The notes below the pieces were generated by a model that was given only the letters and a program-made list of their open reading frames with translations, made no database searches and was not told the DNA's origin. 64,000 nucleotides of DNA from the NCBI GenBank assembly GCA_025201805.1, contig MU619238.1, positions 261,970-325,969 of the forward strand. The letters are read 5' to 3'. Shown here in pieces: positions 39,931 to 50,494 of this stretch. Each line of letters opens with the position of its first letter. Within the stretch, counting starts at the first letter, position 1. This stretch comes from Parasitella parasitica NRRL 2501. Lineage: Eukaryota; Fungi; Mucoromycota. The position numbers and the translations under genes are program-made.

Positions 39931-42900
39931 TTATATAAACGGAATTGTATCCAAATCCAAATCATCTATTTCAGATTCGAGTAAATCATCATCAGCTAGC
40001 TTGTGTTCCTGTTGTTCTCCCTCTCCTTCTTCAAGTTCATCTTTCTTCACCGGGCTGTTAGTTACGTTTAGTTCACTATTACTTGGTGATCTTCTGGAAA
40101 ATACGCCGTTGATGACTTTACTCATGATGCCAGAAGAAGACCTTGCTCGGGTGGTAGGAGCGGTGCAAGTAATGTCATTATCATGCTCGATTTCAGAGGG
40201 TTTATAGTCATCAGGCAGTGACCGCGGGGATGCTAAATGGATAGAATCCGCATCATCTTGGGCCACTTGTACAGCTTCCGCAGTTAAATCAGGGGCACTG
40301 CTGTGCGATGAAAGCTTTTTGGCAGGTGGAGAGAGTGATTTTTTGACAGGTGCCGCCTTTTTAGAGGTAGTAGTGGAGCTGGAAGCTCTGGATGTGAAGC
40401 TGCGCAATATGCCTCGTTTGGGTTCTGGCTCGAAAGCGACGACAGACTCTTTGGGGAGACTTGTTGGATCAGGTTTGATTGGCTTTGGTTTAGGCGAGGT
40501 TGGCAGAGGCCCTTCTTCCTCTAGCTCAGGTATCTCGATATCAGGCATAGGAGGCTTCCAGAAATTGTAATCGCTGTATTCTTCCTGAATTGAATTGTCA
40601 ATGGGAGGAAAAATTTGGTCGACAAGGTCGTTCAAATGAACATATGAAGACTTGAAGCCAATCACCAGCTCTAATTTGACATTGCCTTGCGCATCGATTG
40701 TGAAGATCCTTGAGGATGGCACGCTTACGCTTCTATACGAGATAGCATCTGTGATGCGGTTGCCAAAGCCAGCGTAGAAGGGATCCCGACCACCAAAAAG
40801 CCTTTGTATGTCCCGCAAGCAAGCCATTTTGAACATTTCCGGCTTTCGTATGATAACTTCGCGATGCAAGGAAGTGAACAGTCTGTCTGGAGACATGATG
40901 ACAGGGCCATCAGGAAGCTGATAGTTGCCCTGCAGCACTTTTTTGAGGTAGTCTCTCGTATAATCTGCTTGTCCAATGGCTCGACTGGTAAGATACATGA
41001 AATGATATCCATTGTTGGCAATATCCGTGTATAGTTGAGCTACGCCTGGGTGAGTCCAATCCTTGCCGATCATTGTCATGAGGTGGCCCATTGTATCTGA
41101 CTTGGTGATTGTCCCATCAATGTCAGAAATCACTACCTGAATATCGTGGTCCCAGAAAAACACTTTAGCAACGCAAGTAGCTGTACCTTGATACGCTGAA
41201 CTGACAGAGAAACTGATTGTATTGACGCCCTTCTTTAAATTCAAATTCTTTAGTTGTTCAGATGTCAACCGTAGTGTTTTGGCGTAATTCTTTCGTTGTG
41301 CAAAGAACGGCCCGCTGTCATGAGTGTGGTCTGGGGACCAGCCTACAGATGTCGTTTTTGTCGTAGTAGTGAATGTCGTGCGCTCGCCACTGAACCCTGC
41401 ATCGTAAGCATTACCGCCACCTTCCTTTCCAGGCTCACTTTCACGCCCCAGTGTCGGTAGTGGCTCTGCTGATGATGTACGACTTAGCCATTGTCTCCAT
41501 CCGCGTCCATAAGAATAAGAGTAGGAATCACTACTATCAGATACTTTGTCGTTGGATGCATCTTGCTTTTCCAGCGGTTTTTTAAAGATCAATAATGATG
41601 TAAAAAGCGGGCTGTTTTTGACAGCAGCAAAATAATGGTTTCTGTATCGAAACACCAGTCGAGGATCATTCAAAATGCTTGGATTACGAACGAATGCATC
41701 ATAACTCACTTGCTGATCGTTAAATAGCAACGCATTCTCATTCTGGTCATAGCCAAATGCTGAAAACCCACATAAACTCATCTCTATGCGATAGGTTCGG
41801 CCAGACTTTAGCTTTACCGTTTCGTTTTCGTTTTCGTTTTGATCCTTAGAATCGTCTTTTGTCTCGTTAACTTTGTCATCGCCATCGCCATCGTCATCGT
41901 TGCCGTTGCCGTTGCCATTGCCATTGCCATTGTCGTTGTCGTTCTTGTTGCTGTCATCAGCGTAGGACATTCCCCAACCCCACGATTTGTTATCGACTGC
42001 TGGATCAGATGGCTCGGTAGGTACACCCTTTGTTCCTGCCGCATCATCTCCATGGCTTTTATCTGCCTCTTGACCCTTCTGCTCGGTCTTATAGCCAGAT
42101 ATGTCCAACACAATAGACTCCTTCTCTCCTGAGCTGTCATTCGGCTTTTTTGCTGGATTTTCCGATGGTGATGCAAAATCTTCGTCCACTGTGTGAGTGA
42201 CATCCATCCATAAAGAATTGAGATTGTTCTCTACTGGTCTAACAATGAATCTTTCTTTCGCTATGGTTGTGGTAGTAATCGCCTCAGGGGCTACTCGCTC
42301 TAGTAAAGTTGATCCGTCATCCATTGCGTATAAATTATTCTCAGGCTTAGGGTGATCGGCATAGTCATTGTGCTGAAGCGAGTCCATTTTGGTCACAACT
42401 TTATCCATCTGCTCCTCGATAATCATTTTTGGAGACTGCAGCTCAGCCGGTATCGCTGCATCATTGTCATTTTTACACTCGTCATCGTCAAAACTGTCTT
42501 TTGTCTGTTCAGAGGTATCTATAGCAATTTGGATAAACAATGACATGGTCACTTTACCGCTCGAGAGTTTTACCTTTTCCATCCTTATGCTCGCTGATAT
42601 CAAGGAAAGGAGGTTCCTTTGAAACAACATCAGCACATATAGCACCGTTTTGGATGTCTGGGGGAGCGCTTACCTCAACATCGGACCTATTTTCTGCCAA
42701 CGCTTGCAAAATGGGAGACGTTTGAAATTCTTCGGGGACTTCATGATCTGTTTCAAAGACGAAAAAGGCTTCCCCGGCCTCACCTACTTTCATCAAATAC
42801 GGTACTTGAGTACCGTTTACACTAATCTCGACCTAGCACCAGAGCAGGTTAGTAAGAGTCTTTACACACTGCGAGAACCCCAAATAATGGACGTGCCACC

Positions 42901-43176
42901 AACTCCGATCCACATTGTTCGCATTGACATGACAGTGCCCCCAGAAAATCTGTCATCTAGTCTGTAGTAGCAGTAGTAATAATTTACCTTTTTCTCTTGC
43001 GGCAAAAGAACGGATAGCTTTCCAAACCGAACATGGAAAGGAGAGCTTGCAAGTTCGCCGTTTTCTTGCTCGACTACAATGATGTCAATGGCTCCAGACA
43101 GCGTTGCAGGATTTATCTCATTGTAAAAGTTATTCAGTGAGGTGATGAGGCTGCCAATTCTTCCGACATAGTCCAT
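39931..43176 (-). CDS. PAH1: Lipin/Pah1 phosphatidate phosphatase, multi-exon
   Basis: N-LIP NPATLSGAIDIIVV...SSPFHVRFGK...MKVGEAGEAFFV; C-LIP HAD motif SDIDGTITKSD; YAGFGNRITD. Confidence 0.96.
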
Positions 43177-43356
43177 TTTGAGTATGTATAAATATGCTGA
43201 TTTTGTTGTTTGCGCTTGCTTGAAATAGGCAATTAGTTATTATTTATTATTAGTTGGATTACAATGATATATATTAAAAAGAAAGAAAGATAATAAAGAG
43301 GTACTGCAACAGGCCGCCTTGAAAATATAGACTTGTACATTGAAACTCCCTTATTC

Positions 43357-44039
43357 TTAGACATTATCAGCAGAGTCTAGCTCGATTGGAGAAGATAGCT
43401 TGGCCATGTAAGAAAAGGGATCAATAAGCTTGAGCTCGTCTTTGATGGCATTGCGTGCCAGCAGATCGAGCTCCTTGGTAATCATTGTAACAATTTTCTA
43501 CGGAAAACAAACATTTAGAAGATGCATGTTATAGTAATTGGTGTCTCACACGCACCTTGACTTTTCCATCGCATTTGAGAACCAGCTCAAAATAGGCTTG
43601 TGTGCAAATTGGCCCTTCAGTGCCTATGAGTAGCTTGTGATATGCCTCTGCCATGATATCGATCAGGGTAAAAAAGGTCTCTAAATAGTCCATTTCAAAC
43701 GGCTGTAATAAACAATAAGCTAAATGATCAGATCAGCATGCACAGAATACATTACAATATGCGGGATGATGAGATAGCCATAATCGCCTGTGTTGTCCAC
43801 TGCATTTTCATCTTTGGATTTCTTTCTAAAAATGTTTTTCTATTGTTCCATTTGCGGTAAGCATCAAGTGCAAGCGTTAGTATAGATCAAGTACCATCTT
43901 TTGCTTGGAATCGTCGCTAGTGTGTCTTTCGTATTCGTTCATAATCTGACTAAGAGCTTTGATATAATCCACAGGGTTCGTAATATCTAAAATTGCACCA
44001 AGCGATAAACCTAAAGCGTAGAAATTGTTCGTTCTACAT

Positions 44040-44079
<40 letters not shown>

Positions 44080-44345
44080 ACAGCCATTGAGCACAGATGT
44101 TATTCGCTGCATGTTTGGACTTACCTTTTGACCATGCTTGAGTTTGGATACATGTTTGTTAAATTATCTTTGGTCAACAGGATTGTGTTAAACCAGTGAG
44201 TGTTCCCTTCGTGCGCTTTTCTAATGTATTTGATAGTGGCTACTCTCTTGGATACAAGCTCTGCGAGATATTCATACAGTCCTGGATGGAGTTGATTACT
44301 AGCATTCGTAACAGAAGATGCGTATAGAGGCGAAGATGCTGCCAT
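43357..44345 (-). CDS. Conserved hypothetical helical protein, multi-exon
   Basis: Spliceable exons KRVATIKYIRKAHEGNTHWFNTILL, NFYALGLSLGAIL, PFEMDYLETFFTLIDI, FELVLKCDGKVK, ending ...SADNV*. Confidence 0.75.
44041..44081. repeat. (CA)n microsatellite in an intron
   Basis: About 20 CA units, nearly perfect. Confidence 0.9.
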
Positions 44346-44735
44346 TTTACTGTAGATGTTTGGTTGGGAAAAGATATTCCTTGTCTTGTCCTTGTATTCC
44401 CCTTATTTGATTCCATTATAGAAGCATTGCATATCGTCACGAAGGAGTCACACAAACTTGATTGCATCAAGATCATGAACCATAGGTACCGGCTTTTTCA
44501 TTCAAAAACGAGATACTTTAGCTTACCAAAAACATAAATCAATAAACTTCGTCTTGATCTAGGCTTCTTTTTGTTATATTAGAGCATCTCCAACGGAGAT
44601 GCTAAACAAAAGCCATTTAAAGCACCTTTTATTTTTTACTACCCGGAAATGTTTTGTCTGCTTTTTTGGTAATTGTCTCTGCTTGCTTATTGTTGCTTTG
44701 CTTTTTTGTCTCTGAAGCTCTTTGAATTACTCCCT

Positions 44736-45555
44736 NNNNNNNNNNNNNNNNNNNNNNNNNNNNNNNNNNNNNNNNNNNNNNNNNNNNNNNNNNNNNNNNN
44801 NNNNNNNNNNNNNNNNNNNNNNNNNNNNNNNNNNNNNNNNNNNNNNNNNNNNNNNNNNNNNNNNNNNNNNNNNNNNNNNNNNNNNNNNNNNNNNNNNNNN
44901 NNNNNNNNNNNNNNNNNNNNNNNNNNNNNNNNNNNNNNNNNNNNNNNNNNNNNNNNNNNNNNNNNNNNNNNNNNNNNNNNNNNNNNNNNNNNNNNNNNNN
45001 NNNNNNNNNNNNNNNNNNNNNNNNNNNNNNNNNNNNNNNNNNNNNNNNNNNNNNNNNNNNNNNNNNNNNNNNNNNNNNNNNNNNNNNNNNNNNNNNNNNN
45101 NNNNNNNNNNNNNNNNNNNNNNNNNNNNNNNNNNNNNNNNNNNNNNNNNNNNNNNNNNNNNNNNNNNNNNNNNNNNNNNNNNNNNNNNNNNNNNNNNNNN
45201 NNNNNNNNNNNNNNNNNNNNNNNNNNNNNNNNNNNNNNNNNNNNNNNNNNNNNNNNNNNNNNNNNNNNNNNNNNNNNNNNNNNNNNNNNNNNNNNNNNNN
45301 NNNNNNNNNNNNNNNNNNNNNNNNNNNNNNNNNNNNNNNNNNNNNNNNNNNNNNNNNNNNNNNNNNNNNNNNNNNNNNNNNNNNNNNNNNNNNNNNNNNN
45401 NNNNNNNNNNNNNNNNNNNNNNNNNNNNNNNNNNNNNNNNNNNNNNNNNNNNNNNNNNNNNNNNNNNNNNNNNNNNNNNNNNNNNNNNNNNNNNNNNNNN
45501 NNNNNNNNNNNNNNNNNNNNNNNNNNNNNNNNNNNNNNNNNNNNNNNNNNNNNNN
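44736..45555. other. Assembly gap (820 N)
   Basis: Run of N inside the TIR element. Confidence 1.
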
Positions 45556-46389
45556 AACACAATGATGACGAAAAGATAGAAGCTTTCACCATCAAGTCTT
45601 CACTTAAAACCACATGCACAAATACAACATTCATGAAATCAATTGACAACTTGGTGGAGTGCGCTACCAAAATTACCTATATAGGCTCATTATTTGCAAA
45701 CTTTATCATTCTGAAATGTGCAGACGCCAATGAAGATACGCCAATCATTAATCAAGATTTTGTTTATGCTATATTTTCCACCTTAGCAGGTAATGGGAGT
45801 AGGGCTCCTGAGTTCATCCGTCAATATTTTGAAGAGTTCAAAAATGCGTGCGAGATTGACGAGCAAATTTTAAAGTTTAGATGTTATAGAAAGAAGCAAA
45901 AAGCCTTCAGCGAAATAGTCAAGATGTTTACTAATGATAGCATCAAATACCGTACGAGTGACAACAACGAGAAACAACAATTCTTACTCCCGCCCTCCAC
46001 CACTTGATGGATCAGTTAAAGCAAATAAAACCATCATTGCCTATGGAGATGGAAAATTTTCACCCACCATGAGAGGCAAAAGATCTGGACCTACAAAGAC
46101 TATCATAAAAGCTCTTCAAAAATGTAAAGAAAATCGTGGTGTTACAGTCCAAATGGTAGACGAATACCTCACCAGTCAAGTCTGCAACAACTGCAAAAAA
46201 AGAAATGTTGAAAACGTTGTGCAACGATCAGCAAAGCGAAGAGTATTACAGTGTCAAGAAACCGCTTGTAATATTATTTGGAATCGCGATATAATGGTTG
46301 CAAAAAACATCCTCAACATATTTTTACATGAAGCAAGAAACAATGACGCTCGTCTTTCACCATTCCAGCGTTCTGAATCAAAAGAATAA
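45556..46389 (+). pseudogene. Fanzor1 (TnpB-related RuvC nuclease), internally deleted and frameshifted
   Basis: IIAYGDGKF; VDEYLTSQVCNNC (RuvC-II Glu + Zn finger); CQETAC; WNRDIMVAKNI (RuvC-III); N-terminal FTIKSSL...TYIGSLFANF joined directly to KFRCYRKKQKA near 45870 with no RuvC-I; frameshift near 45990. Confidence 0.85.
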
Positions 46390-46571
46390 TTGCAAGCATT
46401 GTGTGTCATTGACATTACTCTTTGATACGCCATGGGTATTCGGTTTATCCTATACACCATTAAAGGTGAGTAAAATTGTCCAAAAAAAAAAAGAAAGTAT
46501 CACTCTCTCACCAATTTTCTTTTGAAATTAGCACCTCCGTTGGAGATGCTCTTAAAGCAAAAAATCAATAC
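46390..46571 (+). ncRNA. Putative Fanzor omega-RNA scaffold plus flank-derived guide
   Basis: Lies between the Fanzor stop and the right TIR; three hand-identified stems (46411-46480, 46489-46523, 46530-46550); position matches the known TnpB/Fanzor omega-RNA arrangement; boundaries uncertain. Confidence 0.55.
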
Positions 46572-47542: not shown

Positions 47543-50494
47543 ATGAAAAGAAGCATGCTCTCCGCTTTTCCTCTTGTAGTGGCAGGTGTTTGCTTGGCTG
47601 TGTTTGTCATGGCAACTGGGGCCGACAAGATCTCCCACCCCAAATATATAAAGGGCTCCGCCAACACTATTCCTGGTCGCTACATTATTAGTTTTTCTGG
47701 CGCACGACCCGATTCAGGCACAGCCTTCGCTCAATCATTTACCAAAGAATTCAAAGGCGCAAGCCTGAAAGTCAAGGAAAACTTCAGGCATGATTTCTTC
47801 AATGGCATTTCAGTCGACCTTGACAATACGGACGATAGCATCCATACTGCTGCTCTTAAGGCTATCCTTGATAGATCGGAAGTGAAGGCCGTCTACCCTG
47901 TCAAAACAATTGCTCGTCCCAAGGTCATTCTCGAAAGCCAAGGTTCCAGCAAGACGCCTTCTGTCCTGCCCCATGCGATGACTCAAGTTGATAAGGTCCA
48001 CTCAGAACTCAAAAACAAGGGCAAAGGCATTTTTGTTGGTGTTCTTGATACAGGTATTATGACATGTTTCATTGCAGGCTGTTCTATATATAGATATTCA
48101 CATGAAAATCTCTATTTGTGTGTATGCATTAGGGGTCGACTACTTGCATCCTGCTCTGGGTGGAGGCTTTGGCGAAGGCTTCAAAGTCATTAAAGGCTAC
48201 GATTTGGTTGGCGATGCGTACACCGGATTTAACACACCTAAACCTGACAATGACCCTCTCGACGACTGTGGTCTTGATACTGAGGCATCAGGTAAGATCA
48301 ATTGGCTTATAAAGTATTTATAGCTCATCGCAATATGAATAGGTCACGGTACACATGTCTCGGGTATTATTGCTGGTTATGATGAATCCACCGTAAGTAG
48401 ATTAACTGGGATAAGGATAATGGAAGGGGAGGATTTCTGAACAAATGTTAACGTTTTAGAACTTTACTGGCGTTGCACCTGAAGCCAAGCTGGGCATGTG
48501 GCGTGTATTCGGCTGCAAAGGAAGTGTCACCAACGATGTCATTATCAAAGCTTTGCTGATGGCTTACGATGCTGGTGTTGATGTTATCAATTTGAGTTTA
48601 GGCGAGACCAACTCTTGGTCTACTACTACTGATGCTGAAACTAGCGTTGTTAGCAAGATTGTCCAAAGAGGTGTCAGTGGTAAGTTGTACAATTTGGTAC
48701 AAATTCACATGGATAATTGACCTATAAATGCTTCAATTATTTAGTTGTTATTTCTGCTGGTAATTCTGGCGCAAGGGGAATTTATACTGTTGGCCAGCCC
48801 AGCACATCTGTTGATGCTTTCTCTGTCGCGTCCGTTGAAAATAGCTATTATGTCTCCAAGGATCTCAAGGCAACAGGCATTGACCATACTATCCGTAGGT
48901 TAACTAGTCTAAATACCAAATATACATATTAACTAGTGGTCGATCGCTAGTTTACACTGCCAGCAATGATGACTCCAAGTTTTCAGATGGTCAGGTCATA
49001 TACGGTGCTAAATCTGGCGCTAACAGTGCCGAAGGCTGTACTCCTGACTCAATTGATTCCGCTGTTAGTGGCAAAATCGCACTCATTCAGAGAGGCGCCT
49101 GCCCTTTCAGCGATAAGGTCAACAATGCTGCATCTGTCGGCGCCGTTGGTGTTATTATTTACAACAATGTTGCTGGTGCCCTTACTGCCTCGGTCCCTGG
49201 AGTCACTATCCCAGTTATTTCGATCTCCAATGCTGATGGCAAGGCTCTCTTGGATGCTATAAAAGTAGGTCCTGTTAGTGTCACTTTGAACAAGAAGGGC
49301 TCTATTCAGCCAATTGAAAACGCCAACACTATTTCGAGTTTCTCCAGCACTGGCTCCTCTTCTGAGCTCAACTTTAAGCCTAACATTGCTGGTATCGGTG
49401 GCAATGTCTACTCAACTTTGCCTCGCTATCTCAATAGCTACGGTGTCATGTCCGGTACAAGTATGGCTGCTCCCTACGTTGCTGGTTCAGTTGCTTTATA
49501 CTTGAACTCTGAAGGGAAAAACAAGAGACGTTCAATTGCCTACATCAACGAGCAGTTTCAAAATTATGCGTATCCTACAAAAATATTCAACACCACTGAA
49601 ATTGATAGCCCTCTCCGTCAAGGCGCTGGCCTCGTTCAAGTCTATGATGCCATCACTCAAAAGACTCACATCTCTCCGGCACAGATCAGTTTCAATGACA
49701 CTGCTACTACCAAATACAGAACGCAAACCATTACTGTTGTCAACCACGGCTCTACGACCATCCAATATGAAGTCGTAAATGAGGTCGCCACCGGCATCTC
49801 TCCGTATGATGTCAAAGTCTATGGCTATACCCCTATTGAGCCTGCTGCTAACTCTGTTGCTGCTGCCAAACTGCGTTTCTCAAAAAAGCAATTCACCCTT
49901 GCTCCTGGCAAATCTCAAGAGATCAGGGTAACTGTAACTCCTCCCAAGACCAATCCCAAGGATCATATCTTTTACGGCGGTTTTATCCGCGTCAAGTCCA
50001 AGCAATCAACCAAGGGCAAAGACCTCAAAGTTCCTTATTTTGGCGTTGCTGGCAAGCAAAAAGAGCTGCCCATTTTTGACACCGATTTCCCCACAATCAT
50101 TGATGCTAAAAATACTGAATATGGCAAGAATGACACGTTTACCTTTGATCGCTCCAACTCTACTAACGCACCTATCTCTGTAATACGCCTGTTGACTCCC
50201 TCCCCTCAAATTAAGGCTGATCTCATGGATTACAAGACTAGCAAAGTCCTCGGCCAATTCCTCACTGGCCTTGATTATGTCGGTCGTAACTTTCTCGCCC
50301 GCGATCAAGTTTACTATCAATACGTCTGGGATGGCACTTATGTCCCCGCCTCTATTTCCCAGGCTCCCCTTCCTATTGCCGCTGTGGACGGTACCTACAG
50401 GTTCCGTTTTGCTGCTTTAAAGCTTCTCGGTAACCCCAACGACAAGAAGGATTGGGAATCATGGACGTCAGGCCCTATTGTAGTCAAGAACTAA
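47543..50494 (+). CDS. Secreted S8 subtilisin-like protease (I9 prodomain, PA domain, Fn3-like domain), multi-exon
   Basis: Signal peptide; VGVLDTG/VDYLHPALGG; GHGTHVSGII; SAGNSG; SGTSMAAPYVAG; PA insert GKIALIQRGACPFSDK; QGAGLVQV. Confidence 0.95.

Follow-up and report, generated by a model that had tools for sequence, protein, structure and literature searches.

A dead Fanzor1 cassette in a non-autonomous PIF/Harbinger family of Parasitella parasitica and its possible traces of splicing and homing

Introduction

The role of Fanzor proteins for eukaryotic transposons is an open question (PMC10432273, PMC13565253). A locus of Parasitella parasitica NRRL 2501 raises it in a distinct form, since a remnant of the RNA-guided nuclease Fanzor1 lies there between the ends of a PIF/Harbinger element: is the nuclease cargo, or does it act on the transposon that carries it? 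The element occupies positions 44579-46554 of a 64,000-nucleotide stretch of contig MU619238.1 (GCA_025201805.1, positions 261,970 to 325,969, forward strand), here called the window. It is very probably a dead copy with an internal deletion, belonging to a PIF/Harbinger family that is non-autonomous and bears a Fanzor1 cassette, consisting of the gene and its omegaRNA scaffold.

Results

Ends and copies of the element

The element is bounded by 24-bp terminal inverted repeats (TIRs) at 44582-44605 (left, plus strand) and 46528-46551 (right, minus strand). Direct comparison shows that 23/24 bases are identical, and the TTA at 44579-44581 and 46552-46554 forms an exact target-site duplication (TSD), as the initial annotation of the locus had described. 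The left TIR is of the PIF/Harbinger (Tourist) type, contains an internal 9-bp palindrome and is common to the transposase-bearing elements on contigs C49 and C71. It is followed by the left subterminal region and the start of the 5′ arm of the Fanzor cassette (44606-44735, plus strand), collinear with the copies on C4 (1-140) and C70 (1-91 and 365-431), and then by an assembly gap of 820 N (44736-45555).

The ends recur elsewhere. A genome search of the kind that the initial annotation had proposed returned 65 matches to a 17-mer of the TIR against one for the reversed control (32.8-Mb genome), and the right half gave 43 DNA matches. TTA or TAA (TWA) precedes 27/27 left ends and 25/29 right ends that were read (background ~4%), and exact TSDs are present in 13/20 paired copies. 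The family is found at ~40 sites in the genome. MITEs (miniature inverted-repeat transposable elements) of ~600 bp share its TIRs and carry subterminal repeats unlike those of the other members.

Some copies show mixed-register duplications: TTAA on both sides at L054 (C42) and L063 (C96), TTA on the left and TAA on the right, corresponding to a 2-bp TA duplication, at L052 (C4), and TAA/TTA at L061 (C86). Three of these four lie in ATTAA sites, and each element end may pick TTA or TAA independently. At L069 (C8) and on C64, the left and right family ends are separated by ~9.4 kb and 11.8 kb that include gaps; these pairs may be nested or separate half elements, and the two contigs contain no match to the Plant_tran transposase domain. 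A family MITE (C89) is itself the host of a nested Tc1/IS630-type transposase gene on the minus strand (L062:1723-3096; DDE_3 E 1.6e-26), with a helix-turn-helix piece upstream and a 287-aa stretch that is open.

The encoded protein is a Fanzor1

The protein of the window element is a Fanzor1, as first annotated. Its C-terminal open reading frame (ORF) matches the Pfam family Cas12f1-like_TNB (PF07282, E 4.6e-10), which is the profile match of 45934-46389 to a TnpB/Fanzor RuvC domain that the initial annotation had named as the test of its identification, and the best PDB match is GtFz1. A profile built from 37 relatives ranks SpuFz1 (E 2.8e-18), PpFz1 (1.2e-10) and GtFz1 (6.3e-9) above Fanzor2 (3.8e-7) and TnpB. 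The same order was obtained by Foldseek with an AlphaFold model of the RuvC lobe of a sister-family protein (P0155; pLDDT 84). The rearranged catalytic Glu is present six residues before the Zn finger (VDEYLTSQVC, 46156-46185). The C70 copy is collinear with an 863-aa relative, and the family protein is estimated at 860 aa.

Parasitella parasitica carries the active Fanzor1 PpFz1 (PMC11423790). The window family is different from the PpFz1 family of the same species, and identity of the two was ruled out: a single-sequence phmmer search gave no match to 9cf0, only the profile matched, and the omegaRNAs differ. Further Fanzor1 families exist in the genome, with 99 matches in all (C158, C25, C188, C104, C4, C46, C8): a sister family (P0155) at 40-50% identity and several that are more distant. 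Apparently full-length relatives are P0156 (L090, L091; 796 aa), which is an uninterrupted ORF, P0157 (786 aa) and P0010 (L077; 863 aa). A PxP loop (RPPPLD, PPSPLD, PPAPLD or PPTPID) is kept in the RuvC insertion before IIAYGDG in the window copy (45960-46020), P0001, P0151 and P0155. PpFz1 binds cyclophilin via P614 and P616 of its FRI insertion, and a parallel between this contact and the PxP loop is possible.

The window copy is dead

Two coding remnants are separated by a deletion, all on the plus strand. The N-terminal remnant (45556-45869) is 96% identical to C70 1269-1585, and the corresponding family region can be aligned with P0010, an 863-aa relative from Rhizomucor, at residues 204-281. 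At 45870-45874, a TTAAA microhomology marks a junction, overlooked in the initial annotation, at which ~1.4 kb is lost relative to C70. The lost segment takes with it RuvC-I (WAVDPG), the middle of the protein and both coding introns; in C70 these are two 56-nt introns, one of which agrees with the JGI model P0002. The C-terminal remnant (45875-46389, stop codon 46387-46389), delimited by the Pfam and PDB matches and by motif mapping, suffers a 17-nt deletion after 45959 that shifts the frame and a 9-nt deletion after 46243.

The IIAYGDG, CxxxxC and WNRD motifs noted in the first annotation are all present: IAYGDG of the first at 46036-46053, the RuvC-II VDEY with its Glu at 46162-46164, the Zn finger as CNNC (46183-46194) and CQETAC (46252-46269), and WNRD with the RuvC-III Asp at 46288-46290. 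The ORF that had been read at 45934-46389 is indeed the Fanzor C-terminus, except that its first 9 codons are out of frame owing to the 17-nt deletion. The D-E-D triad is incomplete in the window copy, from which RuvC-I is deleted; WAVDPG is present in other family copies. As the deletion junction lies in read sequence, the content of the assembly gap cannot rescue the protein. The window copy cannot encode a nuclease, and at most it could produce an orphan omegaRNA today.

The damage extends to the whole family. None of the 26 copies read in this assembly is intact; the only one that spans the whole gene, C70 (3655 bp), carries 8 indels, against the expectation of an intact member, and potentially a programmable nuclease, elsewhere in the genome. 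Relative to the majority consensus of the family copies, which served as the reference for divergence and domain mapping, individual copies differ by 1.4-4.4% (window copy 2.5%) and have many indels, so that the insertion, initially thought fairly recent, is not very recent. C4 and C231 share the deletion junction of the window copy, which indicates with high confidence that the element transposed after the 1.4-kb deletion. Every deletion class read retains the scaffold and the right end.

Mobilisation in trans and origin of the cassette

Four strong Plant_tran transposase loci are present in the genome (C71, C98, C87 and C49). PF04827 matches C71 with E 6e-22 and the three further loci as well. 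All four have family ends and all are broken, so that none provides an intact transposase. C71 contains both TIRs and a Fanzor tail, C98 a Fanzor tail and the right TIR, C87 a MITE-type right end and C49 the left TIR. A convergent ORF1 with three spaced Trp residues occurs at C87, C98 and C49; that of C87 has a NAM-associated domain (E 1e-12), and searches for Myb in Pfam and of the PDB gave no match. The transposases form two subfamilies, C49 being 78% identical to C71. Since all four strong PIF/Pong-type loci share the ends of the family, mobilisation in trans by Harbinger machinery, as the initial annotation had suggested for a non-autonomous element, is supported, and we hold with high confidence that the element was cut and pasted into TWA sites by the transposase together with ORF1. 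A counterpoint is that the genome yielded no element in which a transposase accompanies a complete Fanzor gene, C71 and C98 carrying only the Fanzor tail.

Two of these loci have further insertions or joins. Beside the left end of C71 lies a 350-bp fragment (L059:1137-1480) that seems to derive from a non-LTR retroelement's 3′ end and is also found on C11, C209, C32, C79 and C39. In C98, a short unique stretch between ORF1 and the Fanzor tail (L072:3197-3256), joined at a TACAG microhomology, looks like a plus-strand intron (GTGAGT, CTAAC, TACAG).

In a tree, the window family nests in a clade with 100/99 support; those of its members whose ends are known, from Mucor saturninus, Thamnidium elegans and Rhizopus microsporus, are bounded by TA-CAG. 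Rooting was at the midpoint, the family branch is long, and an X-joined pair of sequence pieces was used for the tree. No Harbinger ends or transposase were found around ten related loci of other species. With the related loci in TA-CAG ends, capture is the simplest reading, and with fairly high confidence the cassette appears to have been captured from a TA-CAG element, "Mariner-type" as judged by its ends alone.

The omegaRNA scaffold and a candidate intron

A structured omegaRNA is predicted between stop codon and right end. Stem-loop 1 (SL1; 46401-46430, plus strand) has an outer stem of 7 bp and two inner pairs. It covaries across genera: in an alignment of seven sequences, drawn from P. 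parasitica, three further genera and one metagenome contig, 96.8% of cells are paired, four pairs have changed on both sides, and the covariation score was reached by 0/500 shuffles. SL1 also has seven pairs in the Fanzor1 structures of the literature. A second stem-loop (SL2; 46432-46460, plus strand) is predicted by the minimum free energy (MFE) fold and the alignment; it is present in the window family and its nearest relative L078 and absent in other relatives. The MFE z-score of the scaffold is -2.3. Rfam contains no family above or near threshold for it, and a pattern search of the genome for a short scaffold without SL2 gave no match.

The scaffold ends at a sequence resembling a spliceosomal donor. 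In the window copy, a candidate 66-nt intron (46466-46531, plus strand) extends from the donor GTGAGT (46466-46471) past a branch candidate CTCAC to an acceptor AG (46530-46531) within the right TIR, and the corresponding interval is 65-84 nt in most copies. The donor reads GTGAGT in the window family, GTAAGC in Mucor and GTAAGT in Thamnidium and Rhizopus, and is decayed in two related loci. It is found shortly after the ORF in 7/7 published Mucorales element ends that we read (ROr-1, -2, -3, PBl-1, -2, MCi-3, -4); in most of these, an AG precedes the terminus by 2-12 nt. The background frequency of GTRAGY is 7e-4 per base. A second donor-like GGTAAGCT lies deeper in the right end in Mucor saturninus (L088:7056-7314 and L094:2570-2835) and in the metagenome locus (L078:4040), which suggests two introns or alternative donors.

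From this arrangement, we consider it rather likely that the omegaRNA is spliced and uses the right flank as its guide. The precursor would be spliced from the donor at 46466 to the acceptor in the right TIR, with removal of the subterminal DNA, and this would restore the right TIR as a hairpin, the upstream exon itself ending in AG. The right TSD TTA (46552-46554, plus strand) would then be the last part of the scaffold, since the 3′ TSD belongs to Fanzor1 scaffolds (PMC13565253), and the adjoining host flank (46555-46570, plus strand), which differs among copies, would be the guide, by analogy with the Fanzor1 architecture (PMC10432273). No account of spliceosomal processing of an omegaRNA was found in the literature searched.

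Alternatively, the donor-like sequence could be part of the scaffold or mark its end, and the omegaRNA could be used unspliced, either as an RNA that continues through the whole right end (~170 nt) or with the guide directly after the donor. We regard this as doubtful, even though several observations count in its favor and against splicing. The published 75-nt PpFz1 omegaRNA contains a donor-like sequence too (GCAG-GTAAGC) and is active with it retained (PMC11423790). Selection on the donor was not seen within the family, where it varies by 3.9% compared with 2-3% nearby; this is as expected of dead copies, yet not supportive. The best acceptor of the window family lies 20 nt before the end, compared with 10-12 nt in relatives, and the branch candidate CTCAC is weak. 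On the other side, the hexamer takes the form of different common spliceosomal donors (GTAAGT, GTAAGC, GTGAGT, GTATGT) while the sequence downstream is unrelated, and the AG recurs 2-12 nt before most element ends. In addition, S. cerevisiae, the host in which the PpFz1 RNA was mapped, may leave introns of this kind unspliced.

An oriented footprint at the left end

If the right flank supplied the guide, the target-adjacent motif (TAM) would sit 5′ of the sequence that matches it, i.e. at the left end of the element. In the window copy, this position is occupied by ATTA (44578-44581, plus strand), the TSD TTA with the preceding A. ATTA (TSD TTA) or ATTAA (TSD TAA) ends the left flank in 15/17 copies that carry the Fanzor arm, compared with 1/7 Fanzor-less MITEs, 3/11 of all other left ends (P 0.003) and 19.7% of background TWA sites (P 2e-9). 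At the right ends of the Fanzor copies, taken on the opposite strand, it is present in only 6/23 cases (P 1e-4). The only clade relative with an intact left end also reads ATTA. A TAM at the left end was described for Spu-1 elements (PMC10432273); what this family adds is the control from scaffold-less elements with the same TIRs.

These data point, by a slight preponderance, to homing, in which re-cutting of TAM-bearing empty sites followed by repair enriched ATTA sites. While an intact Fanzor existed, each copy would have made an omegaRNA guided by its own right flank; Fanzor1 transcripts reach 14-15 nt past the conserved end (PMC10432273). Harbinger excision is usually precise (PMC4561436) and therefore recreates the substrate that a homing nuclease needs. 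After such an excision, an empty site with an ATTA-type TAM on its left would have been cut again by Fanzor, and the copy would have been restored by repair from the occupied chromatid, so that TAM-bearing copies accumulated. The right junction of the filled site reads CTTA, which would escape an ATTA-type TAM. Some features of the comparison reduce its weight: the ATTA motif was picked after inspection of the data, it appears in either of two registers that differ by 1 nt, and only seven left ends make up the MITE control.

Fanzor could instead have been a passive cargo of Harbinger, with the ATTA bias resulting from a variant of the transposase or a period of its activity. That all copies are broken, that the transposases fall into two subfamilies and that the MITEs differ in their subterminal repeats would fit this explanation. 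It is nevertheless unlikely. The bias is oriented (left 15/17, right 6/23) and lies at the TAM position, whereas a homodimeric DDE transpososome is expected to favour a symmetric target. The retention of scaffold and right end in every deletion class, and the same left-end pattern in Spu-1, likewise count against it.

Direct choice of the insertion site by Fanzor or its ribonucleoprotein, through TAM-assisted or RNA-guided integration, would account for an oriented motif that is near-complete and for a cut register that wobbles around a fixed ATTAA (TTA, TAA, TTAA at C42/C96, TA at C4). It is improbable. Across 20 copies, the right flanks resemble each other no more than shuffled sequences do (best 10/15, P 0.52), on which ground RNA-guided integration was rejected, and we know of no contact between Fanzor and a DDE transposase.

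Continuity across the assembly gap

The two ends of the window copy are separated by the 820 N introduced above. A sister copy without a gap, 1963 bp long on contig C4, is collinear with the window copy on both sides of the gap, with 95.5% identity across the right part that was sequenced. In place of the gap lie 832 bp, which comprise the Fanzor 5′ arm and N-terminus and no transposase. By this comparison a transposase in the gap was rejected, as had been argued from the gap size. The gap is accordingly predicted from C4 to contain the 5′ non-coding part, the start codon and a basic N-terminus with a CxxC-x4-H-x7-C knuckle. Other gap-bearing copies have total lengths of 1.9-2.0 kb. Continuity of the two ends is strongly supported by the comparison with C4, and a scaffolding artefact that joined ends of two different copies, conceivable in a repetitive family with several gapped copies and a gap sequence that was not itself read, is very improbable given the matching TSDs, the agreement of gap (820 versus 832 bp) and total length (1970 versus 1963 bp) with C4, and the exact TSDs of 13/20 paired copies.

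Genomic neighbourhood

The flanking genes are ordinary host genes: a lipin/Ned1 phosphatidate phosphatase (39931-43400, minus strand) and an S8 subtilase with an Fn3 domain (47543-50494, plus strand). Closer to the element is a multi-exon gene without a Pfam match (43500-44345, minus strand), with a (CA)n microsatellite in an intron (44040-44082); the element lies ~235 bp upstream of its ATG. Models of Parasitella parasitica BD408 are the closest proteins (87-92%), and one of these models agrees with the genome at 97-99%, in line with its assignment to P. parasitica.

Comparison with known systems

The window family resembles SpuFz1, PpFz1 and GtFz1 (PMC10432273, PMC11423790) in the RuvC D-E-D residues with the Glu six residues before the Zn finger, in the 7-bp SL1 and in its architecture, in which TIRs flank the element, a TAM-like motif stands at the left end and the omegaRNA region lies between stop codon and right end. 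These three proteins were ranked first by both profile and fold. The relationship is remote (13-21% identity in the fold comparison, made with the sister-family protein), and the window copy is dead. Spu-1 differs further in its TA TSDs and the lack of a known transposase.

The published Harbinger-Fanzor case is MCi-5 of Mucor circinelloides (PMC3627910), where a Harbinger-type transposase likewise accompanies a Fanzor1 of Mucorales. TIRs and a 3-bp TSD are missing from MCi-5, which has only a putative 6-bp TSD, and its transposase, whose role the authors called unclear, was aligned with Harbinger2 proteins (PMC3627910). The window family, by contrast, combines canonical TIRs and TWA TSDs with a Plant_tran transposase (PIF/Pong-type), ORF1 and MITEs. 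MCi-5 is the sole Harbinger-Fanzor case in the literature searched, which did not cover Repbase; a review that lists Harbinger cites the MCi-5 reference (PMC13565253).

With Ping/mPing, PIF/Pong/Harbinger and Tourist MITEs (PMC2836001, PMC4561436), the family shares short TIRs, the TWA TSD, a two-protein autonomous partner and ~600-bp MITEs with the same ends. It differs from these systems in the Fanzor cassette and in the oriented ATTA(A) bias, seen in Fanzor-arm copies and not in MITEs. Among Mucorales Fanzor1 elements with TA TSDs, loci L079, L088 and L092-L094 belong to the same Fanzor clade (~50-56% C-terminal identity) and agree with the window family in SL1 and donor motif; more distant are L086 and the published elements (ROr-1, -2, -3 and PBl-2; PMC3627910), which have a hairpin and donor at the same place. 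All differ from the window family in their TA-CAG ends, an acceptor 2-12 nt rather than 20 nt from the end, and the absence of SL2.

The proposed re-cutting of an empty site after scarless excision is similar to the restorative homing of IS605/IS607 TnpB (PMC13565253), although the DDE transposase of the window family is eukaryotic. Self-splicing works against formation of the guide in IStrons (PMC13565253), whereas here spliceosomal splicing would make the guide.

Discussion

The window copy is a fossil and does not provide a new editor. The family to which it belongs is a clear case of a Fanzor1 in a canonical PIF/Harbinger element, where MCi-5 stayed unclear, and new here are a TAM footprint with its own control and the support for the donor from several genera. 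As a tentative generalization, donor-ended Mucorales Fanzor1 cassettes might lose their right end by splicing and be able to switch transposon superfamily, and homing might have purged copies without a TAM.

The precise excision of Harbingers and their function in yeast allow a direct test of homing, with ATTA as the predicted TAM and the MITEs as a natural control. Should the omegaRNAs of Mucorales be spliced, the scaffolds determined in S. cerevisiae, that of PpFz1 among them, may be non-native, which would affect guide design. If the splicing and homing reading is true, the family would provide internally controlled genomic evidence of a Fanzor maintaining its own transposon in vivo.

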